Shown piece by piece: positions 5,662-61,250 of a stretch of DNA of 64,000 nt (the stretch's first letter is position 1; every line of letters starts with the position of its first letter). Location: assembly GCA_028826165.1 (NCBI GenBank), contig JAPDFW010000053.1:1-64000 (forward strand), given 5' to 3'. This stretch comes from Anaeramoeba ignava BMAN. Lineage: Eukaryota; Protista; Anaeramoebae. The notes under the pieces are model-generated. The model saw only the letters and a list, made by a program, of their open reading frames with translations. It searched no databases and was not told the DNA's origin. The translations under genes were made by a program, and so were the position numbers.

Positions 5662-5955
5662 AATTTTAATTTTAATTTTTATTTTAATTTTAATTTTAAT
5701 TTTAATTTTAATTTTGATTTTAATTTTAATTTTAATTTTAATTTTGATTTTGATTTTAATTTTAATTTTAATTTTAATTTTAAATTTTAATTATTAAATT
5801 TGATTTTAATTTTGATTTTGATTTTAATTTTGATTTTGATTTTAATTTTAATTTTGATTTTAATTTTAATTTTAATTTTAATTTTGATTTTGATTTTGAT
5901 TTTGATTTTGATTTTGATTTTGATTTTAATTTTCATTTTCATTTTGATTTTGATT
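5662..5955. repeat. (TTTAAT/TTTGAT)n tract in the divergent intergenic region
   Basis: Direct hexamer tandem repeat between the head-to-head SLC25 and RNF213-like genes. Confidence 0.85.
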
Positions 5956-6033
5956 TTTAAATTCAGGAAAAAAATTTTTTTTTCCTGTTTTTCAATTTTC
6001 ATTTTTTTTCTTTCAAAACAATTTATTTTTAAA

Positions 6034-9000: not shown

Positions 9001-12000
9001 AAAATTAATCAAATAAATGATTTTGAAAAAGAAATGAATCAAAAAATTAATATTGATTATAAAATTCTTGAATTCATCATTGAATTATTTCCATCAAATA
9101 ATAATTCTCAACAAATATCAAGTAGTGAAAAAATCTTAATTTGGTTAAAATCAAAAAATGAAAAAGAAATTCAGAATGAAATGAAAAAATTAAAATCAAT
9201 TGATTTTATTCTATACAAAGAATTTAAAAAATCTTTAATTAATCTCAAAAATATTTTAAAACCAATACTTTTATCAAACAAATTTAATGATCTTCATTCT
9301 TTACAAAATGAAATTAAGAAAATAAAATTTCAAGAAAAAACAAAAGAAGAAATTGATGTAAAATTATTGATTAAATATTTCCCATTACTCGATATTAAAT
9401 ATAAACAATTTACATATTCATCTACAAATTTACTTCAAGATATTTTCAATATTTTTGAAAAAGGATGCAAATTGATTTTTTATTTGAAAGAACCATTATT
9501 TAAATGTATTATTCAAACAAAAAAATCAAATGAAAGAAATATTGAAGATTTTATCAATATGTTAAGTGTTGCATTAGATAAAAAACCAAAAATTATTTTC
9601 GGAGATAATCAAGAAAATCAATCAAAAAATCGAAAAAAAGAATATATTTTAATTCAACAATATGAGCAATTATTTAAAATTATTGATAAAATTTATCAAA
9701 ATTTGAAAAGATTTATTCCAATTCAATATTATCAAAAAATTCAAGAAATTGATAAACCTTTTAAAATCAAACAAAACTCAAAAAAATCAAAAAAACTTGA
9801 TTATTCCGAAGAATTAAACCAATTTAATAACAAAATTGAAAAAAATCTTAAAAATGGAAAGAAGATGAAGAAAAATTAAAAAGAAATACCTTTAAAAAGG
9901 AATTTTAATCAAAAATCAACAAAAACTTCTTTTTTTTTTTTAATTTATCAAAATCAAAATCAAAATCAAAATCAAAATCAAAATCAAAATCAAAATCAAA
10001 ATCAAAATTTTAAAATCAATTATCAGATTAATTAATGGAGAAAAAAGAACTAACGAAATAAATTTTATGGAATATATAAATCCAGAATTTGAAAAAATTG
10101 ATTTAATTGATTTTTCAAAATCTTTTTTTCAAAAAATTGAAAAAGGTTTCTCCTTAAAATTTATTCAAGATCCCATTTCCAAAATAAAATTATCAATTAT
10201 AGAAAAAAACATAAATCTTCAAGAAATCCAATTTAAATTGAAAAAACAAATCGATGAAAAAGATGGATCAATTCGAAATCCAAAAATATTTATTATAAAA
10301 ATTACAGAAAATTCAAAAATATTGAATTATGTTACAATGATTTATTATTTATATTCAAAATATTTTCCATTAAGAGAACAAATTTTGATTTGTAATTCAA
10401 ATACAAAACCTGAAGATATAATTAATTTTTTCTCAATTTATAAATATTATAATGAAATACAAGAAAATAATTATTCATTTTCATTATTATTTTCAATAAT
10501 TCATGCTGATAGATTATCTCAAAAATGTCAAAATATTCTAATTTCTGAAACAAATTCAATTGATTTCGTTACAAAAATACCAATGATAATATTTGAATTT
10601 TATCAAAAACAAGAAAAAACATTTTTATCTTCTTTACTTCAAGAAGGAGAATTAAATATTGATTTTGGAGATGAAATTAACAAAAATCTGAAACAAATTA
10701 TCGAATGTTCACCAATTTATCGCAATATTTATGTTTTTTATTCAAATTTTACAGGTGAAGGAAAAAGTTTTCAAATTAGAAAATTTTGTTTTGATTTTAA
10801 AGGAAAAACAAATAATTATAAATATCAAATTATTCAACTTAATAAAGGAACAATTTCTGAAATGATTTCTAAATTAAATCAAATTACAAATCAATTAAAA
10901 GAAAAAGAAAAAGAAAAAGAAACAATATTCATTCATATTGAATTTCCAAATAAATGTTCTATTGAAATTTCAGATGCAATTTGGCAACTTACAATGTGGG
11001 GATCTATTGAAAATTCAAATCCAAAATCATCAAAATCTCTTTGTTGGAATATTCAATCAAACATAATTCTTTTATTTGAAATTCCTAATAAACAAGAAAA
11101 GTATCAAAATCAAAATCAAAATCAAAATCAAAATCAAAATCAAAATCAAATTCAAATTCAAAATCAAATTCAAATTCAAAATCAAAATCAAAATCAAAAT
11201 CAAAATCAAAATCAAAATCAAAATCAAAATCAAAATCAAAATCAAAATCAAAATCAAAATCAAAATCAAAATCAAAATCAAAATCAAAATCAAAATCAAA
11301 ATCAAAATCAAAATCAAAATCAAAATCAAAATCAAAATCAAAATCAAAATCAAATTCAAAATCAAAATCAAAATGAAAATCGAAATGAAAAAATGTGGAA
11401 TTCTTTTTATCCACTTTATCAATTTAATTTACATTATTTAAATTATAACAAAGATTCTTTTGTTTTCCAAAATTATAAAATTGATTCAAATCAAAAAATA
11501 ATTGAAAAAGAAGATGAAAAATTAAAAAAAGTTGCAAATTTAATGATAAAATTAGAAGATAAACTATTTAACAACCAATTAGATGCAAATCAATCCGAAA
11601 CTATTAAAGAAATATTAGAAAAAGATGATAAACCAAATCCAAAAAGATTTATTGAATTAATTGAAAAAAATATTTCTATTGTTTTAAATCAATTTAATAG
11701 AGGAAATATGAAAAATATTTACACATTTAGATTATTATCACAATTTTGGAATTCATTAAAAGTATTTATTAATTTAATATTAAAATGGGATTTTCTAAAA
11801 CTCCAAAAAAAGAAATCGAAAAAATTAACAAGATCAATCCTTAAAAGTTGGTTTCTTTCAATTTCAAGATTTATTTTATTTCCTTTATTATCAGAAAACA
11901 AAAATATTTTTGATAATTTTTATACTTTTCTTCCCAAATTGAAATTTAAAAATGAAAATGAAAATATTATTCCAATTTCAATTAAATCAAGAAACAAACA

Positions 12001-15000
12001 AAAATTAGATCATTTTCTTTCAGGATTTGGAATATTTACAAAAAAATATTCAAAAAATTCTCCCTTATTAGATAATCCTGAAAAGATAACAATAAATTTA
12101 GGTTTAGTAGAATCAAAATTTTCTGATACTTTCAATTCTAAAGAAGAAATTGAAAGAATTTTCCAATTTTTCTCTACTCTTAATCCAAAAGAAATTGATA
12201 AAGAATTAATTGAAGAACATAAAAAAGGAAAATCAAAATATGTTCTTACTTTTGATAATGTTTCTAAAATGCTATTTCTTCAATTCAGAAATTTTGTTAA
12301 TCTTCCAACAATTATAAGTGGAGAAACTGGATGTGGAAAAACTTCATTAATTGAATATTTATTTGAAACTATTTTGGAAGAAAAAATCAAAACATTAAAT
12401 GTTAATAATTCTATAAAGAAAAAAGATATTCAAAATTTAATTGAAGAAGGAGAAAAATATTTTCCAAAACCATTTATAATACTTTTTGATGAATTAAATA
12501 CAGCTCCAAAATCTTTTATTCCAATTTTCAAATATTTATTTATTGATAAAATGTTTAATGAGAAAAAGATATCAACAAATATAAGATTAATAGCAGCAAT
12601 TAATCCATATAGAAAAAGAAGTGAAATGGATAGAAAAGAATATGAAAGATTTGGATTATTTTATCAAAAAGATGATGAAAATGAAGAAAATAAGAAAATT
12701 CAAAAATCAGTTTATAGAGTTCAAAAACTTCCAGATTCTTTACAAAAACAAATATTAAATTTTAATTCACTTCAAAAAGAACAAGAATTACCTTATATTG
12801 AAAAAATGGTTAAAAATACATTTGATTCTATTTTTAAAAAAGAAGAAGATATTAAAAGATCCAAAGAAATTATGGAAAATTTTATTGAATATATTAAAAA
12901 ATCTCATCAATATATTAGAGAAGAAGAAAATCAAAATCAAAATCAAAATGAAAAAAAGAATTTAGCTTCAAAAGTTTCGCTTAGAGATATTTCAAGAACT
13001 CTTAGAATATTTAGATGGATTTATGAATCAAGATCAAGAGCTGGTATAATTTTATTAAAAGATAAAATTGATTTAAAACAAATTGATTTAAAACAGATTA
13101 AAGAGCAAAAAGAAGAAATTGGAATAATAATTCAAAAAGCAATTTATTTATCTCTTTTTGTTTGTTATGAAGTTAGAGAAAAAAATCAAGAAAAAAGAAA
13201 AAAATATTCAATTAAAATTTTTGGAAATGGAAAATCAAAAGATTATAAAGAAATAATTGAAAATGCTAAAACAAATTTAATTGAAAATTTAGATTATAAT
13301 TTTAAAGAAAAAATGATTGCAAAAAATACAGCATTAAAAGAAAATTGTTTATTGCTTTATATTTCAATTTATACTCAAATACCTTTATTTATTATTGGGA
13401 AACCAGGTAAAAAATTATAATTAAAAATTAAAAATTTAAATTTAAAATTAAAATTAAAATTAATAAATAATAAATAGGAACTTCAAAATCAATTTCTCTT
13501 GAAGTCATTTTAAAATCTTTTAAACCACCATTTGAAATTAATGAATTATTAAAAAAACTTAATCTTAGATCTCTTTATCAATCTTTTATTCAATGTTCAC
13601 AAATAACAACAAATAAAGAAATTGAAGAAGTTTTCAAATTAGCTAAACAAAATACAAAAAATGAAAATAATTTAGGAGTTGTTGTTCTTGATGAAATTGC
13701 ACTTGCAGAATGGAGTTCTGAATTTCCACTTAAAACACTTCATTCAAAACTTGAAGAATCAGAAAAAGAATTATCAAAAAGACTTCAAAAAAGATTTAAA
13801 CAAAATCAAAATCAAAATCAAAATCAAAATCAAAATCAAAATCAAAATCAAAATCAAAATCAAAATGAAAAATTAGAAGATATTTTAAAAGAAATGAAAA
13901 CAGTTTCAGTTGTTTCAATATCAAATTGGATTTTAGATCCAAGTAATATGAATAGAGGAATTCTTATTTATAGAGATTCAATAACAAAAATTGAAACAAC
14001 AGCTCAACAAATATTATGTTCAGAAAATACAGGAATGAATTCTAAAATCCCAGAACTATTTGTAGATAGTCTTTCAAGAATTTACAAAAATATTATCAGA
14101 AATCAAAAAGAAAAAGATTCAGAATGGAAACCTTATTTTGGACTTAGAGATTTTTATTATTTTGTTAAAATGATTGGATATTCTTATATAACTCATAACA
14201 TTTCTTATAATAATGAAAGTTTAATTTCAAATGCTTTATTAAGAAATTTTAATTCCAAACCAGAAATTATTCAAAATATTTCTCAATTTCAAAATGAATC
14301 CAATTCATTAAATTTAATATCATTAACAAAAATAACAACAAAAGAACTCATTTATCAAAATATTCAAAAAAGAATATTTGAAAATTATGGATTAAATAAT
14401 CCAAATAAAATTTCAGATTTTTCAAGAAATATGATGATTTTAATTGATGAAACTTTAAATTTACCAATTATTTTACAAATTATTGAAAGTTTAATTGAAG
14501 AAGAAGGAAGAAAAATTAGTGTTGTTTTTGGAAATTCTTTCCCAAAAGATCAAACAAAAGTTAAAATTATTAAAGATTTACATAAAGTTGAAAATTCAAT
14601 AAGAAAAGGAGAAATAATTATTTTATATAATAATAACGATTTATTTCTACCTTTATATGATTTATTAAATCAAAATTATATCAAAGAAGGAAATAATCTT
14701 TATGCACAAATTTCAATGGGAAATATTGGAAATTTAATTAAAATTGATCCTAATTTCAGATTAATTTCAATTTGTGATAAAAGTAATGCTTATCATAATG
14801 AAACACCAGCTATTTTAAATAGATTTGAAAAATATTTATTGAAATTAGATGAATTTATTGAATTTGGAATTATTCGAAAATTTTATGAACAACAAAAAGA
14901 AATAATCAAAAAAATTTGTGAATATTCAAAAATTAAAGAAGAAGATTTATTTGTTTCTTATCATTCTGGATTATTTCCATCACTTGCAATAAAACTTCAA

Positions 15001-18000
15001 GAAATAATTTCAAAAAAAAAAGAAAATAAGAATGAAAGGAAAATAGAACAATTTTTGATTTTTGAAGGAGTTAATATGTGGATGAAAGTTTGTAATTTTG
15101 AAAATATTTTTTTAATACAACAAAAAATTCAACAATTTAAATCCAAAATTCGAAAAAATCAAAATAAAAATAAAAAAGAAAAAGAAAATAAAAATCAAAA
15201 TCAAAATCAAAATCAAAATCAAAATCAAAAGGAAAATGAAAAAGAAAATGAAATAGAAATGGAAAATGAAAAAGAAAATGAATTAGAAATGGGAATAAAT
15301 GAATATTTATATTTAAAATATTTTTGTGAAAGATATAATAGTTTATATCATAATAATTTAAATGAATTAATTCAAAATGAATTAAAACCAAAGAAAATTC
15401 AAAAATCAATCATTTTAACATTATCATCATTAAAATCAAAATCAAAAAATATTGAGATTAAAGGATTTAATATTGAAGAATTAAATATTTCTGAATTTGA
15501 TAATGAAAAAGATTTCAAAAAGAAAATTAAAGATATTCTTGGAATATTTCCTCAAAAACCAAATCAAAATAATCAAATGAATAAGAATCAAAGAAAAAAA
15601 GATCCAAATTTCATTTTAATTATTCATTTTACACCAACAAGAAATTTATCAGAAAAAATATTTTATCAATTCAAATATTTAATTGAAAATATAATTGAAA
15701 AAGAAAAAGAAGAAATTAAATGCTTTCTTATGTTTATTGTTCATATTTCATCAAATCAAGAACAAACAAATACATTCCATTTTTCATTTGAAAAAAATTT
15801 TGAATATTATTATATTGATGATATTTTCCAATATGATTTTGAAATGAATATTAATTTGAAAACAACATTCCCTGGAAATTATTTAGAAAAAGTTATTGAA
15901 GAAAATTGGGAAAAAATATTTGAATTAATTATTCCAATTTCTATTCTTAAATTTTTAAATTTAAAAGAAAAAATTGAAAAACCAAAAAATTTTTGAAGAA
16001 ATGAAATTATCAAAAACAAAAAATTTTAATGAAAAAAATAAGAGAAATGATCCAAAAAGGAAAAAATAAAAATATCAAATTATATGAATGGAATATTAAT
16101 GAATTAATTAATGAAAAATTTGAAAAGAAAAGAAGAAATGAATCATTAACTTCATTTATTCAATTTAAATTTAAAGAAAAATTAGAAACTATATTTGCTA
16201 TTTTATTCAGTAATATTATGATTAATGATAATTTCAAACTTTTTCCTATTAATCAAAAAAACACCAATGAAATTCAAAAATTATGGAAAAAGATATTCAA
16301 AAATTTAACAATTCCACATTTCCAAAATATTCTTACTTATCAATTTAATAATTCAAATTTCCCATTTTTCCAATATTTTTATTCCAAATTATTTGAAGAA
16401 ACAAAACAACAAGAAGAAGAAAACGAAATAATTCAAGAAATTATAGAAAAACCTATTATTAAATGGTCTGAAAGATATTCAACTAATCCTAAAATAGGTT
16501 CACAAATATTTCTAGAAGCATTTATGAGTGATTTTACAAAAATATCTTTTACAAAAGAAGAACAAAAGTTTTTAGAAGAATATATTGGAAATATTTCTGA
16601 TTTCATTTATCAATTTGAAAAAAATGAAGATTTAACAAATTTATCATTAAAAGAAATTTCACAAAAAATTAATTGGAATATATTTCAAAAAATTTATGAA
16701 ATTTATAAATATTGTTTGAATATTGATAAAAGATATTTAAAAAAGAAAGAAAATGAAATAGAAATAGAAAAAGAAATTCAAATCCAAATTCAAATTCAAA
16801 AAGAAAATCTAATTTCAAAATTTATCGAAAAACAAATTGAAATTATTGAAAATTATTTAAATAATCATAATTTATCAAATGATTTAACAATTATTTCAAT
16901 TCCACTTGATAAAATTTATGAATTTATAATTGAAATGAAAAAAATGAAAGAATTTGAAAAAGATTTTAAAAAAGATTTTAAAAAATTGTTTGATAAATGG
17001 ATGGAAATTTACATATTATTTCTCAACAAATATAATTTACAAGAAATTAATCAAACTCAAGAATTTCAAAATTTATTTCAAAATTTTAAACTTTCCAAAA
17101 ATGATAAACATTCAAAATCTATTATTGATATTTCTCAATTATGTAAAAATCAAAATGAAAAAATTAATTTATTTGAAAATTATTTCCAAATTATTATAAA
17201 ACAAATTCAAAAAAAAGGAAAAATAAATTCATTGTTGAACAATTTCAGAATTATTACAAAAAAATTCTTTTATCAAAATCAAAATCAAAATCAAAATCAA
17301 AATCAAAATCAAATTTTTGGAATAGATCAAAATGAATTTCAATTTCCAAATTTATTTTCAATATTATTTAGTTATATTTTGAAATTATTAGAAAAAGATG
17401 AAAATTTAAGAAAAATATTTTCAATTATTTAAAAGATTATTTTCCATTTAAAGAAAATGATTTAAAATGGATGAGTTTCACATTTTTATTAACTTTTTTC
17501 CAATACACAAATGATTTTGATTTAACAAAAAAACAAAACAAATTTATTATCAATGAAAAAAGATTCTTTCCAGAAATTGAACAAATAAATGATTTATTTG
17601 AAGAATATCAAAATTTTATTTTAAATATTCATTATATTATTCAAGATTCAAACAAATATTCAAAAATTAAAAATGAAGAAATTCAAAAATATATTTCAGA
17701 ACAAATATTTCAAGAATATGATTTTTTTACAATAAAACATTTGGAAAATATTCAAGAAAAAGAACAAATTAAAAAGAAATTTGATAAAATTTTCAAAATG
17801 GATATTCAAGAAAATGAAGAACAAAATAAGATATTAAATCCAGATGGATATTATTATGGATATTTTGTTTATTTTTTAAATAATCAAGTAGAAGATTTAA
17901 CAAGAATTTTTAATTGGATTACTTCTAAATTAACAAATGATAAAAAAATTGTAGATCAACAAGAAAATATAAAGAATTCTGTTTATAAAATTTGCAGAGA

Positions 18001-20021
18001 TATTGAAACAATAAATGAAGATTTTGAAAAAGTTCTAATTATTATTATAGAAACAGCAGAAAAATATTTAATGAATAAAAATATTGCATTACCAATATTT
18101 AATGATGAAATGAATAATTTCCCAAATAACAGAAATTTAATTTGTGAAAATATTTTAGGAATTAACAATTATCCAGAACCAAATCCAATTTTTACTTTAT
18201 CTGATATTAATTTTATTATTCCAACAAGAATTGCAAGAATTATTCATTATTCATTATTATTTTTATTATTAAAAAATGAAACAAATTCAAAAAATTTAAA
18301 TGAAAAATTAATTTATCATGAAATTAAAAGTTTATCAATTATATTAAATTTATCAATAACAAATACAAAAATTTATTATATTCTTTTCTTAAAAGAAATT
18401 ATCAAAATTCAAGATAAACAAATTCAACTTGGAAAACTTAGTAAACAAATTGATAATTGGAAAGAAGCTTTATATAAAATTTACAGAGAAAAACATGAAA
18501 ATATTCTTTCAAAAATTGAAATTTCAACTTTCAAAAAACCATTTAAAGCAACAAATTTATTATTAACAAATCCAATTTCAATTTCAAATTTAATTTCAAA
18601 TTTCTTAAAAAAATCAAAAAATATTGAAAATAACATTCAAAAATATCCATTAATTTCATTTTTTATTCAAAATTATTTGAAATTTAAAATGATTTATTTA
18701 TTCCCATCATTTATCAAATTTTCAAGTTTTATCAATATCAAATATAATGGGAAAATTACTTTAAAACAATCACAAAAAATTAATATTGAAGATTTATTTA
18801 AAGATTCAAAAGAAAAAGAAATTGAAAAATTAAATGAAGAAGAAATTAAGATATTAGAAAATTGGGAAGATGATTTTAATGAATGTTGGATAATTTCATT
18901 AAGTCAAATCAATAATGATAAAGTCAAGAAATTCAATATAAATAATTTAAATGAACTTGATCAAGAAAACAATCAAATTCCACAAATTATTGATAAAATT
19001 GAACCAATAACAAGAAAATCATTTATCAAAGAAATTCTTTCAAATCAAGAAAAAAAACTAAATATTGCATATTTAATTAAATATATTTCGAAAGAAAAAA
19101 GAATATTAAAGAATGAAATACAAAAATTATTCAATCAAAATCAAATTCAAAATCAAGATCAAGATGAAATAAAAATATCTTTCCCATTTAAAACAGGATT
19201 AAATAAACCCATTTAGAAGAATGATTGATTTATCTTTTGAATTTAATTTGAAAAGAATAGAAGATTATATTAAATTTCATAATATAAAAGATAATTTTGA
19301 TGAATTAGAAAAAAAGATAAATGAAGTTTTTCAAATATTTATTGAAACTGAAAATATTTCAATTATTATCAATAATTTTCAATTTAAAGATAAAATCATT
19401 TTAAATACTTCATTTCTTGATGAATCAAAATGGAAACAAATTAATCTTTCACAAGATACATGGGATGAAATAATTAAAGAACTTTTAGAAAATTTTGCTA
19501 TTCTTATTTTCCAAAAATTTTATCAAAATATTATTCAATTTTGTTCCAATTTAAAAGATGAAAAATTAATTAAAGTTGATCAAACACTTATTGAATTTGC
19601 AAAAGAAAACATGATTCCATTTGAATTAGAAAATATTAAATCAATTAAAAAACTTAAAATTCAACATTTAAGATTTATTCACAATAATATCTCACAACAT
19701 TTTGAATCAATTATTAATAAAATAGATAATCAATATAAAAATCAAATTCCAACAACTTTCTTAAATCAATTAGATTCCTTTTTTGAAAAAATTTCAATTA
19801 CAAATTTGATATTAATTTTCCAAAGTTTCTTTTCAAAAGAATTAATTCAAAAAAATTATTCTCCAGAACAAGAACTTTTAAATAATTTAGTAAATATTGG
19901 AGATTTATTGAATCTTAAAACAGAATCAGAAACTATTCAAAAACATTTTCCTCAAAATTTAACACTTAAATATTCTGTTTCAGTTTATCTTCTTTGTTTA
20001 GATAAACTGAAAAAAAATTAA
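6034..20021 (+). CDS. Giant RNF213/mysterin-like multi-AAA+ protein (~4,600 aa after one intron and correction of ~5 frameshifts)
   Basis: ATG at 6034 and intron 13407-13477. RNF213-type motifs in order: TGEGKS, GETGCGKT, LFDELNT, AAINPYR, VSLRDI, IPLFIIGKPG|TSKS, VVVLDEIALAE..PLKTLH, ISNWILDPSNMNRG, FGLRDFYYFVK, LRNF, FGNSFPKDQ, LYDLLNQNY, LNRFEK. C-terminal FPQNLTLKYSVSVY resembles the RNF213 C-terminus. Confidence 0.88.
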
Positions 20022-20221: not shown

Positions 20222-20600
20222 ATGAAAAATTTAGAAAAAAAAGTAACAAAAAATTTAATTAAAGATTATTCAAACCTTTTAAATGGAAATTCATTTAAAG
20301 ATTTTTCAATTTTTGTTGAGAATAAATCAAATCCTTTTGAAATTAAAGTTCATAAATCAATTTTATCTTCAAGATCTCCTTTTTTTAATGAGTCATTAAG
20401 GCAAGAATCTCTTTCTATTTCTTTAAATCAATTTAATAAAAAAGAAATGGAATCAATTTTGAGTTATATTTATTATGGAAATATTTCTTTTGAGAATCAA
20501 GAAAATCTTCTTCAATTATTGGAAATTTCAATTTATTTTAAATTAAATTTATTGAAAGAAATTATTCAAAAAAACAATTTCAAATTCAATTAATTATTCA
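20222..20600 (+). pseudogene. Truncated BTB/POZ-domain gene, near-identical to the 5' part of the BTB-TLDc gene at 57149-57560
   Basis: BTB motif FKDFSIFV..EIKVHKSILSSRSPFF..ILSYIYYG. The nucleotide sequence matches the reverse complement of ~57170-57560 and the ORF ends just after the BTB domain. Confidence 0.75.
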
Positions 20601-20685
20601 AATTTTTTCCAATTTTTTTTCAAATAATAAATAACCGATAATCAAATCTAATCATAGTAAATATTTCTAAATTAATCAAAAATGT

Positions 20686-21305
20686 ATTTATAAATTAAAT
20701 GTTAAATTAAATTAATTCTCATTTTTTATATTTATATGTTTAATATTTAAATAATAAAATATTTAAATTTAAAACAATAAATTATTATTTTAATAATAAA
20801 ATTAAATATTAAATTATATTTTTAAATTAATTTATAAATTAAATATTAAATTAAATCTATTTCCATTTTTTATATTTATATGTTTAATATTTAAATAATA
20901 AAATATTTAAATCTAAAACAATAAATTATTATTTTAATAATAAAATTAAATATTAAATTATATTTCTAAATTAATTTATAAATTAAATGTTAAATTAAAT
21001 TAATTCTCATTTTTATATTTATATGTTAAATATTTAAATAATAAAATATTTAAATCTAAAACATTAAATTATCATTTTAATAATAAAATTAAATATTAAA
21101 TTATATTTTTAAATTAATTTATAAATTAAATATTAAATTAAATCTATTCTCATTTTTTATATTTATATGTTAAATATTTAAATAATAAAATATTTAAATC
21201 TAAAACAATAAATTATTATTTTAATAATAAAATTAAATACTAAATTATATTTTTAAATTAATTTATAAATTAAATATTAAATTAAATCAATTTCCATTTT
21301 TTATA
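20686..21305 (+). repeat. Tandem array of ~144-bp AT-rich unit (~4.3 copies), same family as the arrays at 52362-53521 and 57996-58975
   Basis: Period measured from 21121 to 21265; unit contains AAATCTATTCTCATTTTTTATATTTATATGTTAAATATTTAAATAATAAAATATTTAAATCTAAAACAATAA. Confidence 0.9.
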
Positions 21306-21361
21306 TTTTTTTTCATTTTTTTTTTCATTTTCATTTTTTTTTTTTGAATTTTTTTTTTTAA

Positions 21362-34319: not shown

Positions 34320-37300
34320 TCATTTTATATTTAAATCTCTTTCTAATTTCTCTCGAAATTCTTTCATAACTAATGAAGATTGAAATTGACAAAAAACTTC
34401 TTCTTTCTGATCCAAAATTAATTTTAAAAGAGGTTTTGTTGGAGAAAATACAAAATCAATTTTTTCATAAGAAAAAACAATTTCTTCAATTGAAGTTGAA
34501 ATAATCAAACAATTTAAATCACTTGAAATGAAAATTTTATTTGAAATTTTAATTGGAATTGATGATTGCAAAATTTTGACCAAATGGAAATTATTTCGAA
34601 CTTGATTAAAATGATCAACAAACCGAATCAAATCTTGTCGCTCGAGAAATTGAAACGAAATCCTTGTTTTATCATCGCGAATTATGACAATTTTTTCTTT
34701 TTGAACAATAAATAGAAACGGATTTAAAATTCGGAACGTTTTCACAATTTTACTTCCTACTTTGCAATTAATTACATTCTGCGCATCGCAAACGACTATT
34801 CCACAAATCTTGTAATTCTTTGTAATGAAATTTGTGCTGAATACTTTGTTGTGAGGATTTGTTTCTTGATCATTTCCGTTTTTCTCGTTTTCCAATTCGT
34901 TTTCTTGATTTTTTGCCATTGTTTCTAAATCTTCCATTTCTTGTTCCTTTTCAAGTTCATCGGGATCTAAATCTGGCTCGTTTTCATCTTCCTCGATATT
35001 TAACACTTCGTTTATCGAATGATTTTGAACGAATTTTTCGATTTTGCTTTTATCTTCATTCGATTCACTAAAAAAATTCTCTTCAGTTTCTTGGTCATTT
35101 TTGTATTGATTTCCTGAATCATAAACAAAGTTTTTGAGTCGGTAAATCTCCGCGAAATGTTGAATGAACATGTGTTTGTGGGATTTTCGATTAAAAAGTA
35201 AAATAAATTCACGCGCAAAATTTGGCTTTTTTAGGCGAAGTTTTAATATTTTTGGATTTTTTAAATGGTCGAAAAAAAGTTCATTTCCAGAATAGAAAAA
35301 TTCGAAATAGGAATTGGGGAACTGATGATATGATATTGTGCCGAAGGATTCCTGTAGTTCAATTATTGCTTGATATTTTTGCGAAAGAGATATATTTGAA
35401 AAAATCTCGACTGAAAAAGATCCTGGAAATTTCAGTTTTTGTGTCTGTTCGTTGTTTTGGGCGATTGGAAGAAGAAAAGCCTTGAATTGTGTGGAGAACT
35501 CGTTAAACAATTCCAAATAGAGATTTGTTTTCTGGTTCTTCTTGTCGATAATTCTTTGGATTATTGTTCTTTTTTGGCGTGAATTCTGGCATTTTATATT
35601 GATTTCATGTTGGTAATTTTCTGAAAAAAACTTGAGCATAAAAGAGTCATTTTCATAAAAAGGAACTATGACTTCGAGCGCCTGATAGATGATCTTTCTT
35701 TGTTGCCGATGAAATTGGTAATGAATGTATGTTGGCTCTAGTTTTAGATTCATGGGTAAAATGATCTGGTTTTGAGAGACAAACAAAACCTCAAAATTAT
35801 CAAATTGCAATTTTTTTTGGACATTTTGGAGTATTTTAATAAACATTTGTTTTTCCTGAGAATCGCTGAATGCAAAATAATGGGTCTGACCTGAGTTGAG
35901 TAGCTCGAGAAAAGAAGGGTTTTGATCTGAAAAATTAGAATTTAAAACGAAGTTTTTATTGAGTTCAATTATTCTTTTGTGTTGTGTATCCGAATCAAGA
36001 ATGCCGATAATTGAGCCGACAAGAATAACATGAAGTATTGTGTCGAGTACTGCGATTTTTTCAGGATCAAAGGGATGAATTTGGAACAATTTGATGGGAA
36101 GATAAGGATCGGGAATTTGTTGAAACAAAAAGTAATTCAAGTTATTTTTAAAATTTTGAGGAAGTTTCAATTGAATTGTAAAATCAACAATATCATTGAG
36201 ATTTGCATTTTGCAGTTGATGAATAGGATTTGAGGATGAGAAATGCTTCTTTAATTTATGGAACTTCTTGAGAAATAATCTGCGTTCAAATTCTGAGTCA
36301 AATTGAAGAAATATTTTTTCGTTATCGTGAGTAAAGTAAATTTCGATATTTCGGTTGAACTCAATCAATGGATTGATTTGCGAGATGAAGAAGTCGCGCT
36401 CTCGGTTTTCCTGGCTCAGAAGGATCGAGATTGTGCGTTGCAAAGGGTTGATTTTCAATATCCCTTTGACACTGGTTGTTTGATATTGAAGTGTGATTTG
36501 AACCGGGAAAAAATCTTCATTTTTCATGATATGCGGATAGTTCTCCATCATCTGATGCGCGTTATATTTGGAGTCAAATATTTTCAGAGCGCGAATGAAC
36601 TGATGCTTGGTTTTCCAATTCAGAAATGTGAATTGTATTTCTGTTTGGATTCCCATGTTTGAGAACTTGATCTTGATTTTGCTATCTGTGTACTCATTTT
36701 CTAATTCTTCGCGGTTGAATAAATAGTATCTTGAAAATATCCCGTTATTATTCAAAACAAGAAGAAAGTCCTCGTTCAGGATTATTGTTTGTTTCCCGAT
36801 GTTTGACCCGTCTTGTGTGAGCGTTGCTGCGAATTTGTTTGATGTCTTGCGGATTCTTGAAATGAATGTATTTTGACATGAAGAAAATAAACGGAAATTT
36901 GTTTGATTTTGCTTGAGAATTTCGCGAATTTCGTCCACTTGAATTTTACTTGCAAAAATGAGGATAATGAAAAAATCATGCGACAATTTGACAAATAAAT
37001 ATTGCTCATTTTTGGAATGAACTTTGAACTTCATTGAGCGTAAATATTGGAAGTTGTAAATTCTTTTTGTTGATTTTTGCGATTGTTTTTTTGAATTGGG
37101 CTCTTGCGGCGGTAAATCAATGATGATTGAGAAAATATCGGGAGAAATGATGATTGAACAGGGTTTTATTTTTCCCTCGTTTGTTTGAATGGAGCATTTT
37201 GCAATTTTGTTGTGTTTTTTATGCGAGAACCATTGCTTAAGAAAAGGTGAAGCATGTTTTCTTTTGTTCTCAAATTGCAAGACAAAAGAAAGCGATTCTG

Positions 37301-52361: not shown

Positions 52362-53521
52362 TTTAATTTAAATTATAAATTAATTTAAAAATATAATTTA
52401 ATATTTAGTTCTATTATTAAAATAATAATTTAATGTTTTAGATTTAAATATTTTATTATTTAATTATTTAACATATAAATATAAAAAATGAAAATAAATT
52501 TAATTTAATATTTAATTTATAAATTAATTTAAAAATATAATTTAATATTTAATTTTATTATTAAACTAATAATAATTTAATATTTAATTTTATGTTTAAA
52601 ATAATAATTTATTGTTTTAAATTTAAATATTTTATTATTAAAATATTTAACATATAAATATAAAAATAAGAATAGATTTAATTTAATATTTAATTTATAA
52701 ATTAATTTAAAAATATAATTTAATATTTAATTTTATTATTAAAATAATAATTTAATGTTTTTAGATTTAAATATTTTATTATCTAAATATTTAACATATA
52801 AATATAAAAAATAAGAATAGATTTAATTTAATATTTAATTTATAAATTAATTTAGAAATATAATTTAATATTTAATTTTATGTTTAAAATAATAATTTAA
52901 TGTTTTAGATTTAAATATTTTTATTATTTAAATATTTAACATAAAAATATAAAAATAAGAATAGATTTAATTTAATATTTAATTTATAAATTAATTTATA
53001 AATATAATTTAATATTTAATTCCATGTTTAAAATAATAATTTAATGTTTTAGATTTAAATATTTTATTATTTAAATATTTAGCATATAAATATAAAAATG
53101 AAAATAGATTTAATTTAATATTTAATTTATAAATCAATTTAAAAATATAATTTAATATTTAATTTTATTATTAAAATAATAATTTATTGTTTTAGATTTA
53201 AATATTTTATTATTTAAATATTTAACATATAAATATAAAAATAAGAATAAATTTAATTTAATATTTAATTTATAAATTAATTTAAAAAAATATAATTTAA
53301 TATTTAATTTTATTATTAAAATAATAATTTAATGTTTTTAGATTTAAATATTTTATTATTTAAATATTTAACATATAAATATAAAAATAAGAATAGATTT
53401 AATTTAATATTTAATTTATAAATTAATTTAAAAATATAATTTAATATTTAATTCCATGTTTTAAAATAATAATTTAATGTTTTAGATTTAAATATTTTAT
53501 TATTGAAAAATATTTTGAAAA
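52362..53521 (-). repeat. Left inverted array, ~8 copies of the ~144-bp unit
   Basis: Recurring AATAGATTTAATTTAATATTTAATTTATAAATTAATTT..GTTTTAGATTTAAATATTTTATTATTTAAATATTTAACATATAAATAT. Confidence 0.9.
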
Positions 53522-53997
53522 AATAAATGAATAAAATATTTTAATTAAATTAATTTAAAAATGGAATAAAAGATTATTAAATAATTAAATTTAAAACTAA
53601 TTTTATTTTATATATTTTATTAACATTTATTTATCTAAAATAATATAAAAATAATTCCCAATGATTTAATAAAATTGAAAAGAAAATTGTAATATTTTAA
53701 TAAAGATAAATAATGGATTTTAATAATAATTAATAATAAATTATAATTAATTGATTTCCTATTTTATATTTTATAAAATATTTTACAATTAATAATAATT
53801 AATTTATCTTTTCAATTTTTTTATTTTTTTGAAAAGAAAAATTTAAATTTAATCTTATTTTTAATCATATTTTTAAATCAAAATTAACTTAATTGAAATT
53901 ATATTTGTTTTCTTATTTATTGATTTGAAGAATTTAATTTGATTGAAAGTAAATTAAAATTGAATTAAATTTTGAAAAAAAAATTAAAAAATAATTT

Positions 53998-56900
53998 TTA
54001 AATGAAATAAGTCTCAAGTTCATCAACAACCCATTCATTAAAAGAACCAGCTAAATAACTTTTAGCTTCATTTGTATCATATTTAATTCCATTAGGTAGA
54101 TTATAACTTTGACCAAAATTTGATTCACCAGATTGTAAATCAGAATCTATCCAAATATCATCTATAAATATTTTAATAAAGATAAATAATTAATTTTAAT
54201 AATAATTAATAATAATTTAATTTAAAAATTAATTTTATTTTAAATTGAAATAATAATATTATTTATTATATTAATATTTTGGATTATTTATTAATTTTAT
54301 TTTAATTATAATAATAAATATTTATTAAATATAAATTATTTACCATCTATTTTAATAAAGATAAATAATTAATTTTAATAATAATTAATAATAATTTAAT
54401 TTAAAAATTTTATTTTATTTTAAATTAAAATAATAATATTATTTATTATATTAATATTTTGGATTATTTATTAATTTAATTTTAATTATAATAATAAATA
54501 TTTATTAAATATAAATTATTTACCAACTATTTTAATAAAAGATAAATGATTAATTTTAATTATAATTAATAATAATTTAATTTAAAATTAATTTTATTTT
54601 AAATTGAAATAATAATATTATTTATTATATTAATATTTTTGGATTTATTTATTAATTTAATTTTTAATTATAATAATAAATATTTATTAAATATAAATTA
54701 TTTACCATCTATTTTAATAAAGATAAATAATTAATTTTTAATAATTAATAATAATTTAATTTAAAATTAATTTTATTTTTAAATTGAAATAATAATATTA
54801 TTTATTATATTAATATTTTAGATTATTTATTAATTTAATTTTAATTATAATAATAAATATTTATTAAAATAATAATTATTTACCATCTATTTTTTAATAA
54901 AGATAAATAATTAATTTTTAATAATAATTAATAATAATTTAATTTAAAATTTTATTTTATTTTAAATTAAAAATAATAATATTATTTATTATATTAATAT
55001 TTTGGATTATTTATTAATTTAATTTTAATTATAATAATAAATATTTATTAAATATAAATTATTTTACCAACTATTTTAATAAAGATAAATGATTAATTTT
55101 TAATTTATAATTAATAATAATTTTAATTTAAAATTTAATTTTATTTTAAATTGAAATAATAATATTATTTATTATATTAATATTTTGGATTATTTATTAA
55201 TTTAATTTTAATTATAATAATAAATATTTATTAAATATAAATTATTTACTCCCTATTTTAATAAAGATAAATAATTAATTTTAATAATAATTAATAATAA
55301 TTTAATTTAAAAATTAATTTTATTTTAAAATTGAAATAATAATATTATTTATTATATTAATATTTTAGATTATTTATTAATTTAATTTTAATTATAATAA
55401 TAAATATTTATTAAATATAAATTATTTACCATCTATTTTAATAAAGATAAATGATTAATTTTTAATTATAATTAATAATAATTTAATTTAAAATTAATTT
55501 TTATTTTTAAATTTAAATAATAATATTATTTATTATATTAATATTTTGGATTATTTATTAATTTAATTTTAATTATAATAATAAATATTTATTAAATATA
55601 AATTATTTACTCCCTATTTTAATAAAAGATAAATAATTAATTTTAATAATAATTAATAATAATTTAATTTAAAATTTAATTTTATTTTAAATTTAAATAA
55701 TAATATTATTTATTATATTAATATTTTGGATTATTTATTAATTTAATTTTAATTATAAATAATATATATTTATTAAATATAAATTATTTACTCCCTATTT
55801 TAATAAAGATAAATAATTAATTTTAATAATAATTAATAATAATTTAATTTAAAATTTAATTTTATTTTAAATTGAAATAATAATATTATTTATTATATTA
55901 ATATTTTAGATTATTTATTAATTATAATAATATATATTTATTAAATAATAGATTATTTATATTTACATCCAAAACTTGGACCATAATCTAAATCATATTC
56001 AATTGCATATTCTTCTTCTCCTTGTTTAATTGTAAACTTTTCAGGTTTTCTATCTCCTTTATCATTTCTTAATGAAAAAATAAATGCATTTGAATCAATA
56101 ATATATCCCCAATCATAATTATCTTCTCTCCATTTTGATTTATCATTTGTCCATCCAACTTGAGTAAAACCTCCAAAAATGAAATCCTCTGTTGTTTTGA
56201 TAATAATTAATGTTTTTCCTTTATTATCAACTGCTTTATGCCAATTTTTAGAATTAAATCCATCTCTTTTTGCTGAAAATCCTTTTTTCATTTTAGAAAA
56301 AAAATTATTATCATTTATCCATTGTTTTAATTTCTTAACATATCCTTTTTCTTTAATAATTTCTGAATCTGAAAATTGAGGTAAAATCTTCAATAATTCA
56401 TTTTGGTTTTGTTTTGATTCTTCTTTTTGATTTTCTTTTTCAAATAATAATTTAATATTTTGAATTTCTTCATCTTTTTGTTTGAGAATTTTATCTTTCT
56501 TTTCATTTTCTTGTTTTTGGTTTTCATTTTCTGATTTTAAATTTTGATTTTCTTTTTCTTTCTTTTGAATTTCTTGTTTCAAATTTTGATTTTCAGATTC
56601 AAATGATTTGATTTTCTTTTCTTTCTTTTCATTTTCTTTTTCTTTCTTTACATTTTCTTGTTTGAGATTTTGATTTTCTGATTCAAATGACTTAATTTTT
56701 TTATCTTTTTCTTTGATTCTTTTTATCTCTTCTTTTAATTTTCTTTTCATTTTGTTTGATTTTCTTATCTTTTTCTTGATCTTGAATTTGAAAAATAGTT
56801 CTTTCAAAATGAATTAAAAAATAATTTGGAAGAAAAATATCAAATTGTTTTAATTTATCAAAATCTTGTTTTGAAATTGAATCTTTATCAAATAATGAAA

Positions 56901-57622
56901 AAAAAGAATGAAATAATCTTTTCTTTTCATTCATTTTGTGTTTATATTTCCTTAATTTTAATCTTTTAACTCTTTTTTCAATCCAATTATTTAAAAATTG
57001 AAAAAAATCAAATTGAAAAATTTCTTTTTTTTCTTGTTTAAATTGAATAAATTTGATAATTTCTTCTTTAGTTAAATTGAATAAATTTTCATTATTTTGA
57101 ATTTGGGAAAATTTTTGATTTATTAATTCAAAACATTTTATTTCAATTTCATTTGAATTTAAATTTCGATTTTGGAATAAAAATTGGAAAAATTTGAATA
57201 ATTAATTGAATTTGAAATTTTTGAATAATTTCTTTCAATAAATTTAATTTAAAATAAATTGAAATTTCTAATAATTGAATAAGATTTTCTTGATTCTCAA
57301 AAGAAATATTTCCATAATAAATATAACTCAAAAATTGATTCCATTTTCTTTTTATTAAATTGATTTAAAGAAATAAAAGAGATTCTTGCCTTAAAAACTC
57401 ATTAAAAAGAGATCTTGAAGATAAAATTGATTTATGAACTTTAATTTCAAAAGGATTTGATTTATTCTCAACAAAAATTGAAAAATCTTTAAATGAATTT
57501 CCATTTAAAAGGTTTGAATAATTTTCAATTAAATTTTTGTTACTTTTTCTAAATTTTTCTTTTCATTTTCATTTTCATTTTGATTTTGCATTTTGAATTT
57601 GGTTATTATTATTATTATCCAT
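53998..57622 (-). CDS. BTB - BACK-like - coiled-coil - TLDc protein (frameshifted in this consensus; possibly a pseudogene)
   Basis: ATG 57622; BTB ~57200-57540; KE/QN coiled coil; TLDc (FSAKRDGF..WHKAVDNKGKTLIIIKT..IFGGFT..DSNAFIFSL..GPSFG). Spliced from 55967 to the last exon 54161-53998 (YDIWIDSDLQ..SNFGQSY..YLAGS..VDELETYFI*). Confidence 0.8.
54162..55966 (-). repeat. Ten tandem ~180-bp GT..AG intron units separated by nine 3-nt candidate micro-exons
   Basis: GATAAAT anchor recurs at 54181, 54360, 54541, 54722, 54902, 55084, 55266, 55446, 55628 and 55808. Each junction reads TAG-NNN-GTAAA on the minus strand. Confidence 0.9.
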
Positions 57623-57995
57623 TTTGTTTTTTGTTTTTGTTTTTGTTTTTGTTTTTGTTTTAAAGAAAAAGGAAAAATGAAAAAAAATTTAAAAATTTAA
57701 AAATTGGATTTTGAAAATAAATAAAAATATAAAAATGAGAATAAATTTAAATTAATAATTAATTTAATTTTCTTTTTAATTTATTATTTTAAATTAATTT
57801 ATTAATAAATTATTATTATTTTTATTAATTTTTATTATTAAAAAAAAGGAAAATTATTTTAATTTAATTTTTAATTTAATTTTTTTTTGGAATTTAAAAA
57901 TTATTAATAAATTTAAATTTTAAAACAAATTTTCTAAATTAATATTAATTCAATTTAATTCAAAAAAAAGATAAAATTTTAATTTCAAAAATCAA

Positions 57996-58975
57996 TTTTC
58001 AAAATATTTTTAAATAATAAAATATTTAAATCTAAAACATTAAATTATTATTTTAAACATAAAATTAAATATTAAATTATATTTTTAAATTAATTTATTA
58101 AATTAAATATTAAATTAAATCTATTCTTATTTTTATATTTATATGTTAAATATTTAAATAATAAAATATTTAAATCTAAAACAATAAATTATTATTTTAA
58201 TAATAAAATTAAATATTAAATTATATTTTTAAATTGATTTATAAATTAAATATTAAATTAAATCTATTTTCATTTTTATATTTATATGTTAAATATTTAA
58301 ATAATAAAATATTTAAATTTAAAACAATAAATTATTTAATAATAAAATTAAATATTAAATTATATTTTTAAATTAATTTATAAATTAAATATTAAATTAA
58401 ATCTATTCTCATTTTTATATTTATATGTTAAATATTTAAATAATAAAAATATTTGAATCTAAAACAATAAATTATTATTTTAAACATGGAATTAAATATT
58501 AAATTAAATTTTTAAATTAATTTATAAATTAAATATTAAATTAAATCTGTTCTTATTTTTTATATTTTATATGCTAAATATTTTAAATAATAAAATATTT
58601 AAATCTAAAAAACAATAAATTATTATTTTAATAATAAAATTAAATATTAAATTATATTTTTAAATTAATTTATAATTAAATATTAAATTAAATCTATTCT
58701 TATTTTTGATATTTATATGTTAAATATTTAAATAATAAAATATTTAAATCTAAAACAATAAATTATTATTTTAATAATAGAATTAAATATTAAATTATAT
58801 TTTTAAATTAATTTATAAATTAAATATTAAATTTATTCTATTTCCATTTTTTATATTTTTATGTTAAATATTTAAATAATAAAATATTTAAATCTAAAAC
58901 AATAAATTATTATTTTAATAATAAAATTAATTATTAAATTATATTTTTAAATTAAATTATAAATATTAAATTAAA
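57996..58975 (+). repeat. Right inverted array, ~6.8 copies of the ~144-bp unit
   Basis: Same unit and orientation as 20686-21305; reverse complement of 52362-53521. Confidence 0.9.
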
Positions 58976-59123
58976 TTTCTGAATAAATTTTACAAGATTT
59001 TCAATAAAAAAAATCAATTTAAAAAAAGTGGAATTTTGAATTTTGAATTTTGATTTAATTTTGAATTATTTCTTAAACCAAAATAAACGGAAAAAAAAAG
59101 GAAAAGAAACAAAATCATTTTTC

Positions 59124-61180
59124 TCAAAAGAAAAGGAAAAAGAATAAAAGAGCCATTCCAAATAGAATTGAATTAATTGAAGCAGAAGAAGCATCAAATT
59201 GATAAGATGTTTGAAATGTATAATTTGCAATATAAGAATTAATTGTGTAGTCAAATTTTTCATTATTAATTCCTTCAACTCTCACTACAAATTGTGTTCC
59301 AACTCCTGAACTAAATGATTTAATGAAATAATTATAATCTGTTCTACTTAAATCATACCAAACTCCATTAGATTTTACTGAAATCATATTAATTCCAATT
59401 CTTGAATCTCTAACTTGAAAAGCAACCCACCTTTTTCAAATTGATTTTCATTTTGATTTTGATTTTAATTTTGATTTTCATTTTGATTTTAATTTTGATT
59501 TTAATTTTGATTTTGATTTTGATTTTGATTTTGATTTTGATTTTGATTTTAAATTTAATTTTAATTTTAATTTTAATTTTAATTTTAATTTTAATTTTAA
59601 TTTTAATTTTGATTTTAATTTTGATTTTAATTTTAATTTTGATTTTAATTTTAATTTTGATTTTGATTTTAATTTTAATTTTAATTTTGATTTTAATTTT
59701 GATTTTGATTTTGAATTTAATTTTAATATTAATTTTGAATTTAATTTTAATCTTGATTTTGATTTTAATTTTAATTTTAATTTTGAAAATTATTTACCAT
59801 TCATTTGAACCATTTTTTGTATGAATTTGAAAACCAGGAAGACCACTAACATCACAATCAACATATTCCCATGAAATATCAATTCTTCCATCTCCCATTG
59901 GAGCAAGCATTGCAAAAGCATCTTCAGATAAATCAAGATCACCAGATAAACATTCCTTTGAAATAGAATTTTATAATAATTTTTTCTCAGTTATAGATCA
60001 AAATGGAAAAAAATATATAAAAAAACACAATTTGAAACTTACTGGACATTTATCTACAATTTGAACTGTAACAGGATTTTTCTATTTTCCACAAAAATTA
60101 TTAATTGATTTAATATTTATTTAATATTGATTTAATATTGATTTAATATTGATTTAATATTTATTTAATATTTATTTAATATTGATTTAATATTTATTTA
60201 ATATTGATTTAATATTGATTTAATATTGATTAAATATTGATTTAATATTGATTTAATATTGATTTAATATTTATTTAATATTTATTTAATATTGATTTAA
60301 TATTGATTTAATATTTATTTAATATTGATTTAATATTGATTTAATATTGATTTAATATTTATTTAATATTTATTTTTAAAAATTTATTTAATATTTTATT
60401 TAATATTTGATTTAATATTGATTTAATATTGATTTAATATTGATTTTAATATTGATTTAATATTTTAAATATTGATTAAATATTGATTTATTATTTATTT
60501 AATATTTATTTAATATTTATTTAATATTAATTTAATATTGATTTAATATTTATTTAATATTTATTTAATATTGATTTAATATTAATTTAATATTGATTTA
60601 ATATTGATTTAATATTTATTTAATATTGATTTAATATTGATTTAATATTGATTTAATATTGATTTAATATTTATTTAATATTGATTTAATATTGATTTAA
60701 TATTGATTTAATATTTATTTAATATTGATTTAATATTGATTTAATATTGATTTAATATTTATTTAATATTTAATTTTGATTTAATATTGATTTAATATTT
60801 ATTTAATATTTATTTGATATTGATTTTAAATAAAATTTACATAAGAAGGATTATCTGGATAAGGTCCCCATATTTTTGCACATCTTCCACAATTATTACT
60901 TCCATCCCAATCCTTTATTAAAAAAAATTAAATTAAATTAAATTAAATTAAATTAAATTAAAAAAAATTAAATTAAATTAAATTTTGATGAAATTTTCTT
61001 ATTGAATATTTTTTTTTTAATCACTGGTTGATTTAAAGCAGCAACAAGTAATGGATTAGCATTACTTTCATCAAAAGAACAAGTTCCTCCTCCTGTTGCA
61101 TTATAAAAAGTACCATCACCTGTAAATAAACAAAATAATTGAGAAAATAAAATTACAAAAAGAAACAGTTTTAAAATCAT
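59124..61180 (-). CDS. Expansin-like (EXLX/YoaJ-type) secreted protein with hydrophobic C-terminal (GPI-like) signal
   Basis: Signal peptide; DPBB domain (GDGTFY..GTCSF..AALN..CGRC..VQIVDKCPEC..DLDLS..AF..GRIDISW); CBM63-like domain (NGSNEWWVAFQVR..RTDYNYF); tail ASSAS..LFGMALLFFFLFF. Four introns, including 60082-60840 of (ATTGATTTAAT)n. Confidence 0.88.
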
Positions 61181-61250
61181 TTTATTTTTGATTTATTTAA
61201 AAAAAGAAAAATGAAAAAATTTTTTTCTCCTTTTTTTTTTTCTTTAATTT

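Follow-up and report, generated by a model that had tools for sequence, protein, structure and literature searches.

Background

In the 64,000-nt stretch of the Anaeramoeba ignava genome analysed here (hereafter, the window), a BTB-TLDc gene is enclosed by two oppositely oriented arrays of a 144-bp satellite and sits in the short gap between a PDI gene and an expansin-like gene. How did it come to lie there? The initial annotation, made from the letters alone, took the arrays for the terminal inverted repeats (TIRs) of a Foldback-type transposon, mobilised in trans and carrying the gene as cargo. Our analysis points instead to copying of a gene module by host repair. Such copying would offer a testable route to hundreds of protist ubiquitin-adaptor genes without a transposase, with one big gene family providing the landing sites of another. 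It also carries a caution for repeat annotation, as recombination can leave a gene enclosed by a 1-kb inverted repeat as a mere by-product.

Results

Layout of the module in the window

The features of the module are collected in Table 1. The arrays consist of units of 143-144 bp, and the two arms are 96% alike across 972 aligned bp; the about 8 and about 6.8 inverted copies counted at first sight are real (8.0 and 6.8 units). Both inner ends do stop at the same sequence, one motif at unit phase 117, and the inner end of the 3' arm bears the 5'-type terminal variant. The outer ends had been assigned to the same register as well: they do occupy one region of the unit, yet their phases differ at base level (about 3-14 on the left and 2-19 on the right, varying with the scoring), so that the statement is valid only within 10-15 nt.

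Table 1. Features of the BTB-TLDc module (52362-58980) and of a second, broken copy in the window
Feature	Coordinates	Strand	Remarks
144-bp satellite array, 8.0 units	52362..53516	+	3' arm of gene, opposite to 5' arm; TRF, k-mer scan
Single 145-bp repeat unit (145b), unrelated to the 144-bp unit	53525..53670	-	145b arrays sit 3' in most other copies
Conserved 3' flank	53690..53997	-	includes degenerate unit akin to 167/180-bp repeat
Last coding exon, C-terminal part of TLDc	53998..54161	-	stop codon 53998-54000
GT..AG interval, about ten 180-bp units	54162..55966	-	within BTB-TLDc gene
Nine candidate 3-nt micro-exons	54344, 54524, 54706, 54884, 55068, 55250, 55430, 55611, 55792	-	predicted from sequence
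First exon: BTB, BACK, coiled coil, most of TLDc	55967..57622	-	
Conserved upstream region	57623..58000	-	distal 300 bp about 1.4% different among copies; putative promoter
144-bp satellite array, 6.8 units	58001..58980	-	usual 5' arm of module family; TRF, k-mer scan
Broken copy: BTB 5' fragment and 144-bp array	20222..21310	fragment +, array -	same window

The identity of cargo and neighbours was confirmed. Searched exon by exon, the enclosed gene gave domain matches for BTB, a BACK-like region and TLDc. The PDI gene matched a thioredoxin domain, while the expansin-like exons, unnamed by Pfam, were named through PDB expansin sequences; each flanking gene is single-copy. Comparison of the window junctions yielded no target site duplication (TSD), as first noticed, the longest common words being A/T strings of 8 nt, of which one lies within the arrays. 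An empty PDI-expansin site was sought without success, there being no paralogue in the BMAN assembly and none in the JGI metagenomes.

Features beyond the initial annotation are the array at 20661-21310, the single 145b unit (53525-53670) and the make-up of the gene's internal 180-bp array. The first belongs to the broken copy, whose BTB 5' fragment is 93% identical and whose 4.3 array units abut the start of a CAP-Gly gene.

That repeat-bearing pieces were joined in inverted order during assembly is hardly credible. The repeats are very A+T-rich, and the frame of the first exon is broken by several 1-4-nt indels, mainly at homopolymer runs, which betray imperfect polishing; but the arrays span only about 1 kb in an assembly made from long reads, two further loci (L021 and L024) share the inverted layout, and no other copy among the loci read has a TLDc more than 91% identical to that of the window copy.

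A module family with fixed inner and ragged outer ends

Genome-wide, there are 167 occurrences of the inner-end motif, far beyond chance given none for a reversed control, and the module exists in about 150 copies. As anticipated, the 144-bp unit is tightly associated with BTB-TLDc genes, on dozens of contigs. We read the sequence at 30 loci; other genome-wide figures come from coordinates paired by hand for the first 100 of the 167 inner ends. The usual order is (144-bp array)n, promoter, BTB-BACK-coiled-coil-TLDc gene, 3' flank, (167-bp)n and (145b)n, with 3' ends that vary in position, some lying past the stop codon, some within the 3' flank and some inside the 145b array.

The inverted-arm layout is a minority form of this module. 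The 3' flank motif was found at 12 sites, as against 167 inner ends, so at most 12 of the about 150 copies can carry a 3' arm. Inverted pairs with unrelated flanks, the arrangement first envisaged for the family, are thus rare, and many copies share flanks (14 of 32 array ends). Could the 145b array stand in for the missing arm, making every copy an imperfect inverted-repeat element? We rejected this idea, as the 144 and 145b units have no significant similarity (z 0.3 and -0.8).

Inner ends are fixed, whereas the outer ends of 18 arrays with unique flanks lie at 16 different positions. These nevertheless bunch, 13 of the 18 within a 40-nt arc (P ~0.001), and the preferred phases are close to AT-rich palindromes of the 144-bp unit. 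The sequence AAATGAAA adjoins five of the 18 unique outer junctions, against a background of 4.7%. Microhomology could account for part of the bunching, and a nuclease could also produce it. Array units differ by 4.5% within arrays and 4.8% between them and hence form one pool; the two window arms, 4.4% apart, are no closer to each other than arrays elsewhere.

These results bear directly on the proposal of a non-autonomous, MULE- or P-type Foldback, in which the arrays would be modular TIRs and a transposase encoded elsewhere would cut at a unit boundary and move the gene. The window copy looks the part. Its flanks are unique, its inverted arms measure 1 kb and their outer ends occupy one region of the unit; with Tm1, Tetris and Galileo it shares long inverted arms, a variable number of tandem units and a non-transposase middle. 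In Foldbacks the outer motifs or flanking domains are defined and TSDs of 8-10 bp are present (Tm1, PMC3169594; Tetris, PMC4079207), though decayed copies can be without a TSD (PMC3169594). The A. ignava module, unlike these, has a ragged outer and a fixed inner end, the reverse of a TIR; it has no TSD at the window junctions, a 3' arm in fewer than one-tenth of copies, mostly a single 144 arm, and arms that resemble each other no better than unrelated arrays do. The genome does hold potential enzymes (17 MULE matches, with 15 MULE domains over the cut-off, some scoring identically, together with 10 DDE_1-like and 7 recombinase matches), but neither MULE nor tyrosine-recombinase genes are enriched beside array ends. 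One MULE match lies near the listed array ends, 2.4 kb away on contig C106, against about 0.7 expected. With many flanks shared as well, we consider mobilisation in trans very unlikely.

A DDE_1 open reading frame adjoins a solo array at L007, near chance level; it makes an improbable autonomous partner, as the genome has 10 such matches and none of the others lies beside a listed array end. Retrocopying or a non-LTR retroelement was rejected, as copies keep their arrays, 300 bp of upstream sequence and an intron array of 1.8 kb, and their 3' ends lack poly(A). A Helitron, which would have a 5' TC, a fixed 3' CTRR end with a hairpin and a RepHel partner, was rejected because both module ends vary.

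RCC1-BTB tails as proposed landing sites

The flank shared by many copies is the 3' tail of RCC1-BTB genes, a finding that the initial annotation had itself named as contrary to its reading. The tail motif occurs at 1,246 sites in the genome. Among the first 100 listed inner ends, a tail-to-144 junction lies just upstream in 26 and a 145b-to-tail junction 2.7-5.8 kb downstream in 24; both occur at about 12, where the tail forms a 270-bp direct repeat. By pattern, neither junction is present in over half of the copies listed. Both tails were confirmed in sequence at six loci, pairing at L015 and L026 having been completed from sequence. Left-hand tails pass directly into the array, while right-hand tails retain a hexamer run (L011, L012, L016 and L017) or, at L015, a longer C-terminus. 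At six places the coordinates put the two junctions 260-305 bp apart, in a head-to-tail arrangement.

Tails at the same locus are as far apart (5.0%) as tails of different loci (4.8%; 3.5% and 3.8% without outliers), which rules out a TSD-type or LTR-like duplication. Nor did the tails compared give any signal of a homogeneous, donor-derived half, the mark of a single founding circle. A dedicated circular element, attaching at the tail and excised and integrated in trans by a nicking enzyme or tyrosine recombinase, could produce the direct terminal repeats and head-to-tail junctions; the end phases near palindromes and six tyrosine-recombinase matches over the cut-off would also suit it. We nevertheless hold it to be quite unlikely, as no recombinase lies within 10 kb of any listed array end, the tails have no fixed crossover point and the ends scatter across 40 nt.

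Age of the module and its hosts

Synonymous divergence among occupied RCC1-BTB hosts is 0.15 (0.11-0.20), against 0.046 in the module BACK, and the putative promoter differs by 1.4% among copies. On these sequence distances, the divergence of the hosts thus appears to be about three times that of the module's 5' part. Host and cargo distances are uncorrelated (r -0.07 and -0.43).

These ages weigh on a rival explanation, ordinary tandem or segmental duplication, in which gene conversion and purifying selection keep promoter and BTB alike and the arrays are passengers or promoter elements. In its favour are the shared flanks, the module clusters on contigs C35 and C114, the outer array ends that often directly precede the start of an outward-pointing gene, and a tree test in which a single clade of occupied hosts was not rejected (p-AU 0.42), so that a part of the copies may have arisen by segmental duplication of both genes together. 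As a general account it is unlikely: it leaves unexplained why the 270-bp tail is repeated left and right of the module with a single fixed junction, why the module is younger than its hosts, and how copies such as that in the window came to have unique DNA at either end.

The trees contain signs of exchange. An intron-bearing TLDc clade (support 100/99) mixes two N-termini that are mutually only 33% identical, and within it one sister pair has mixed N-termini (support 99/95).

Discussion

A copying model

The explanation that we favour with moderate confidence, taken as a whole, is that this is a young, A. ignava-specific gene module which probably spreads by transposase-free, duplicative copying at the DNA level through the host's homologous and microhomology-mediated repair, and that the window copy would be a recombinant of two BTB-TLDc subfamilies. 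We infer every event in the model from one assembly. First, rare microhomology joins, seen in the sequence as junctions, would have fused the arrays on both sides to an RCC1-BTB gene's terminal 270 bp. Should one of the approximately 1,250 RCC1-BTB tails then break, it could be mended from an occupied donor, with strand invasion at one tail and return at the other; alternatively, a popped-out circle could re-enter through a single crossover. Either route would yield host gene, tail, module and tail, with the host's 3' flank displaced rightwards, and either would also yield head-to-tail dimers. If a copy thereafter breaks close to the outer end of an array, it may join unique DNA at A-rich microhomology, which would leave a ragged end without a TSD. 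Finally, exchange within TLDc with a second BTB-TLDc family, in which the 144 array is on the 3' side, would give hybrids with inverted arms. The window copy may be such a hybrid, placed by copying in the PDI-expansin gap. The earlier suggestion that the unit could drive expansion of BTB/TLDc genes is plausible, the array being tied to these genes and dispersed, with unique flanks in the window.

Comparison with known systems

Campbell-type integration and accordion amplification work between direct repeats. The A. ignava loci resemble their products: the module is bordered on either side by direct repeats that differ in origin, dimers occur in tandem and the host 3' end is displaced. Gene conversion, however, yields the same product, and a circle or integrase would be hypothetical. 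Copying of this kind has precedents in bare satellites and in the VSG genes of trypanosomes, where an expression site is involved; our literature search found no paper on such copying of a promoter-bearing gene module, nor for Anaeramoeba.

The Rsp-like satellite of Drosophila simulans and D. mauritiana spread into 1.688 clusters, for which extrachromosomal circular DNA or interlocus gene conversion was proposed, a rare hybrid junction seeding new sites through homology to an abundant resident repeat (PMC7403614). Both systems have one characteristic junction, at microhomology and common to loci, and a variable one. The Rsp-like satellite moves alone and lands in another satellite, whereas in A. 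ignava a promoter and a protein-coding gene land in the coding tail of a 1,200-copy family. In Trypanosoma brucei, 70-bp repeats upstream of VSG cassettes supply homology for duplicative gene conversion (PMC4858185). Both are large variable gene families whose members have a dedicated upstream tandem repeat. VSG genes have an expression site and undergo switching, neither of which is known in A. ignava, where each copy has its own putative promoter and the products are predicted intracellular adaptors.

A diversifying cargo

The enclosed gene corresponds in part to A. ignava M0811_04754, and the annotated protein P0001 links the last coding exon to the upstream open reading frame. TLDc is usually a conserved domain; in the module family it is diversifying (pN/pS 1.56, against 0 in BACK). 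Domain knowledge and these ratios suggest that the cargo is probably a Cullin3-type adaptor with TLDc as its variable recognition surface. In the BTB and F-box adaptor expansions of plants and nematodes, the cullin-binding part is conserved and the substrate-binding part diversifies. The A. ignava genes differ in that the variable part is TLDc and in being packaged with dedicated satellite arms.

A bolder reading, possible but doubtful, is that of a transposase-free homing cassette with the coding tail of the 1,200-gene adaptor family as attachment site and a circular form. Its 5' and 3' halves would be swapped via the arrays, and the TLDc repertoire, thus amplified and shuffled, would gain further variation in one loop from arrayed 3-nt micro-exons. 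Within the intron array, each boundary between 180-bp units reads AG, three variable bases, GT.

Layout and flanks of the window cassette

Two arrays of a 143-144-bp satellite unit (the 144 unit), 96% alike over 972 bp, enclose a BTB-BACK-coiled-coil-TLDc gene, the 3' part of which carries the annotation Anaeramoeba ignava M0811_04754; all 120 homologues among the matches listed are from A. ignava. The initial annotation had correctly described these inverted arrays, the common sequence at which both gene-facing (inner) ends stop, and their position between the 3' ends of convergent PDI and expansin-like genes. The common stop is phase 117 of the unit, and both flanking genes are single-copy in the assembly. 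The outer ends, said to stop in the same register, do share a region of the unit, but they stop at different bases. Since the PDI and expansin stop codons are only ~265 bp apart with the cassette removed, an insertion fits the locus. No target-site duplication (TSD) is present at the window junctions, as already noted, and no second strain was found, nor an empty PDI-expansin site in the assembly or the JGI metagenomes. That the cassette is a misassembly seems extremely improbable. The best PDB matches of the expansin-like gene are bacterial EXLX-type proteins, and it was possibly acquired by lateral transfer.

Features located in the window and at other loci of the A. ignava assembly
Location	Feature	Orientation
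Window 5800-20021	Very long A+T-rich coding region, several frames
Window 10067-13417	AAA_5/AAA_7 ATPase match
Window 20222-21310	Broken second module copy
Window 34320-37280	986-codon open frame
Window 52362-53516	144-unit array, 8.0 units	Opposite to other array
Window, between the two arrays	BTB-BACK-coiled-coil-TLDc gene	Minus
Window 58001-58980	144-unit array, 6.8 units	Opposite to other array
Window 59127-61192	Expansin-like gene
L007:1-558 (G000:C75:298575)	Pogo-like DDE_1 transposase ORF
L010:2208-3268	Second-family BTB gene beside 144 array
L014:6490-6816	144 array, gene-less module
L020:1533-2478	Distantly related 144-bp array
G000:C106:33098-33382	MULE domain

A gene module with fixed inner and variable outer ends

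The inner-end motif occurs at 167 sites in the 42.8-Mb assembly, against 0 for a reversed control, with a same-strand TLDc match typically following 1.3-2 kb downstream. At the 30 loci read, the usual order of what we call the module is 144-unit array, 300-bp upstream region (~1.4% substitutions among copies), gene, 3' flank, 167-bp array and an array of a 145-bp repeat (145b) unrelated to the 144 unit. A gene enclosed by an inverted pair was read in the window and at two other loci (L021 and L024), with ~4 further places likely from coordinates, and the 3' flank that accompanies the inverted arm has only 12 sites in the genome, so that fewer than one in ten copies have the window-like form. 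The window arms diverge by 4.4%, versus 4.8% between arrays generally, and each is closer to arrays of other loci than to its partner.

The initial annotation had taken the arms for terminal inverted repeats of a Foldback element. Such elements carry defined motifs at their outer ends and TSDs of 8-10 bp (PMC3169594; PMC4079207), whereas in gene-linked arrays the inner end is fixed in every case and the outer end varies: 18 outer ends in unique flanks occupy 16 positions of the unit. Thirteen of these lie inside a 40-nt arc, compared with 32% expected from random cuts aligned in the same way (P ≈ 0.001, the ends perhaps not all being independent), and a AAATGAAA motif, resembling the unit's own A-rich segment, adjoins 5 of the 18 versus 4.7% of background windows. 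The module's 3' ends also vary, falling right after the stop codon, within the 3' flank or within the 145b array. Genome matches to MULE (17), DDE_1-like (10) and tyrosine-recombinase (7) domains are not enriched by array ends (1 MULE match within 3 kb, ~0.7 expected). A Foldback element, despite the inverted arms, is thus very unlikely, and the cassette is a real feature assigned to the wrong family; searched genome-wide, inner ends do lie upstream of TLDc matches, but inverted pairs are rare and an RCC1-BTB flank recurs. Spread as a dedicated enzyme-driven circle is distinctly unlikely.

At L007, 200 bp separate the end of a pogo-like ORF, which has ~10 related matches in the genome, from a solo 144 array. 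The C106 MULE domain lies 2.4 kb inward from a module start and may have inserted into that copy. The broken window copy comprises a BTB fragment and, after it, a 144 array in inverted orientation; a short-period repeat stands in the promoter's place, and a CAP-Gly gene start directly adjoins the array. The L014 array retains 55 bp of promoter fused to 3'-flank-like sequence and is an internally deleted module; the 144-bp unit arrayed at L020 is a distant relative of the main one (z 9), a third satellite of this kind.

RCC1-BTB gene tails and probable spread by recombination

Of the 32 array ends read, 10 run straight into the 3' end of an RCC1-BTB gene. The final 270 bp of such a gene (the tail; 1,246 motif sites in the genome) recur beyond the module at six loci as a direct repeat, which begins at a single, fixed junction that shares microhomology with the 145b unit. 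For the first 100 of the 167 inner ends, manual pairing of coordinates gave 26 with an upstream tail junction, 24 with a downstream one and ~12 with both; in six head-to-tail joins the downstream junction is followed 260-305 bp on by an upstream one. Paired tails were rejected as a TSD because those of one locus differ as much as those of different loci (5.0% and 4.8%). The right-hand tail retains an apparently host-own 3' flank, and in L015 a longer C-terminus. Synonymous divergence is 0.15 in the RCC1 repeats of occupied hosts versus 0.046 in BACK, and no correlation was found between host and cargo distances, which suggests that the module entered already diverged hosts. Occupied hosts as one clade were not rejected (p-AU 0.42), and the tails, tested for descent from one founding circle, showed no signal of it.

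The observed layout, counts, end variation, direct repeats, tandem junctions and mosaic tree lead us to favour, as the probable explanation, a satellite-armed gene module spread by recombination, the inverted-repeat form being a by-product. Homologous repair between tails would copy the module, by gene conversion or by re-entry of a circle, both of which lead to an identical product; microhomology joins would place it at unique sites, and exchange inside TLDc would take place between families. Plain duplication with conversion is rather unlikely. By analogy, the closest published case is that of the Rsp-like satellite spreading to 1.688 clusters, where one microhomology junction is fixed, the other junction varies and the satellite hitchhikes on a resident repeat (PMC7403614), and the closest gene-bearing one the trypanosome VSG cassettes with their 70-bp repeat (PMC4858185); the module would work like both systems and belongs to neither. 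A term search of the main text of the genome paper (PMC11550330) found no mention of these genes or repeats.

How the inverted form may have arisen

In a second BTB-TLDc family, whose N-terminal part shares 33% identity with that of the first, a 144 array lies on the 3' side, often accompanied by a same-strand array 40-100 bp before the start codon (L018, L021, L023, L024). In the TLDc DNA tree, the intron-bearing clade (support 100/99), which includes the window gene, contains both N-termini, and one sister pair has mixed N-termini (99/95). A first-family 5' half joined to a second-family 3' half automatically yields inverted arms. The window left arm may be a separate join, since it differs from L021 and L024 in having a 5'-type terminal variant at its end and one 145b unit before it. 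At L010, the second-family gene lies on the inner side of the array, joined at a different junction.

Coding potential

Over 91 TLDc codons, the most variable loop left out, pN/pS was 1.56 (bootstrap 1.05-2.37) versus 0 in BACK, a contrast that holds even though A+T bias can inflate such ratios. Frame-breaking indels in the window gene fall mostly in homopolymer runs. Other copies show indels at the same places, while 6 of 15 lack any in this stretch; the breaks are likely assembly error. Across eight genes, a 180-bp array has exactly three bases between AG and GT at 72 of 77 unit boundaries, and these columns vary far more (0.67, 0.25, 0.67) than the remainder of the unit (0.027). The triplets fall in a loop variable in length and sequence among intronless copies, and the window frame stays open with all nine included; we regard them as candidate 3-nt micro-exons.

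Elsewhere in the window, the 986-codon frame gave no match in a Pfam search and has GC raised to 31-34%, and the ATPase match lies within the long A+T-rich coding region.
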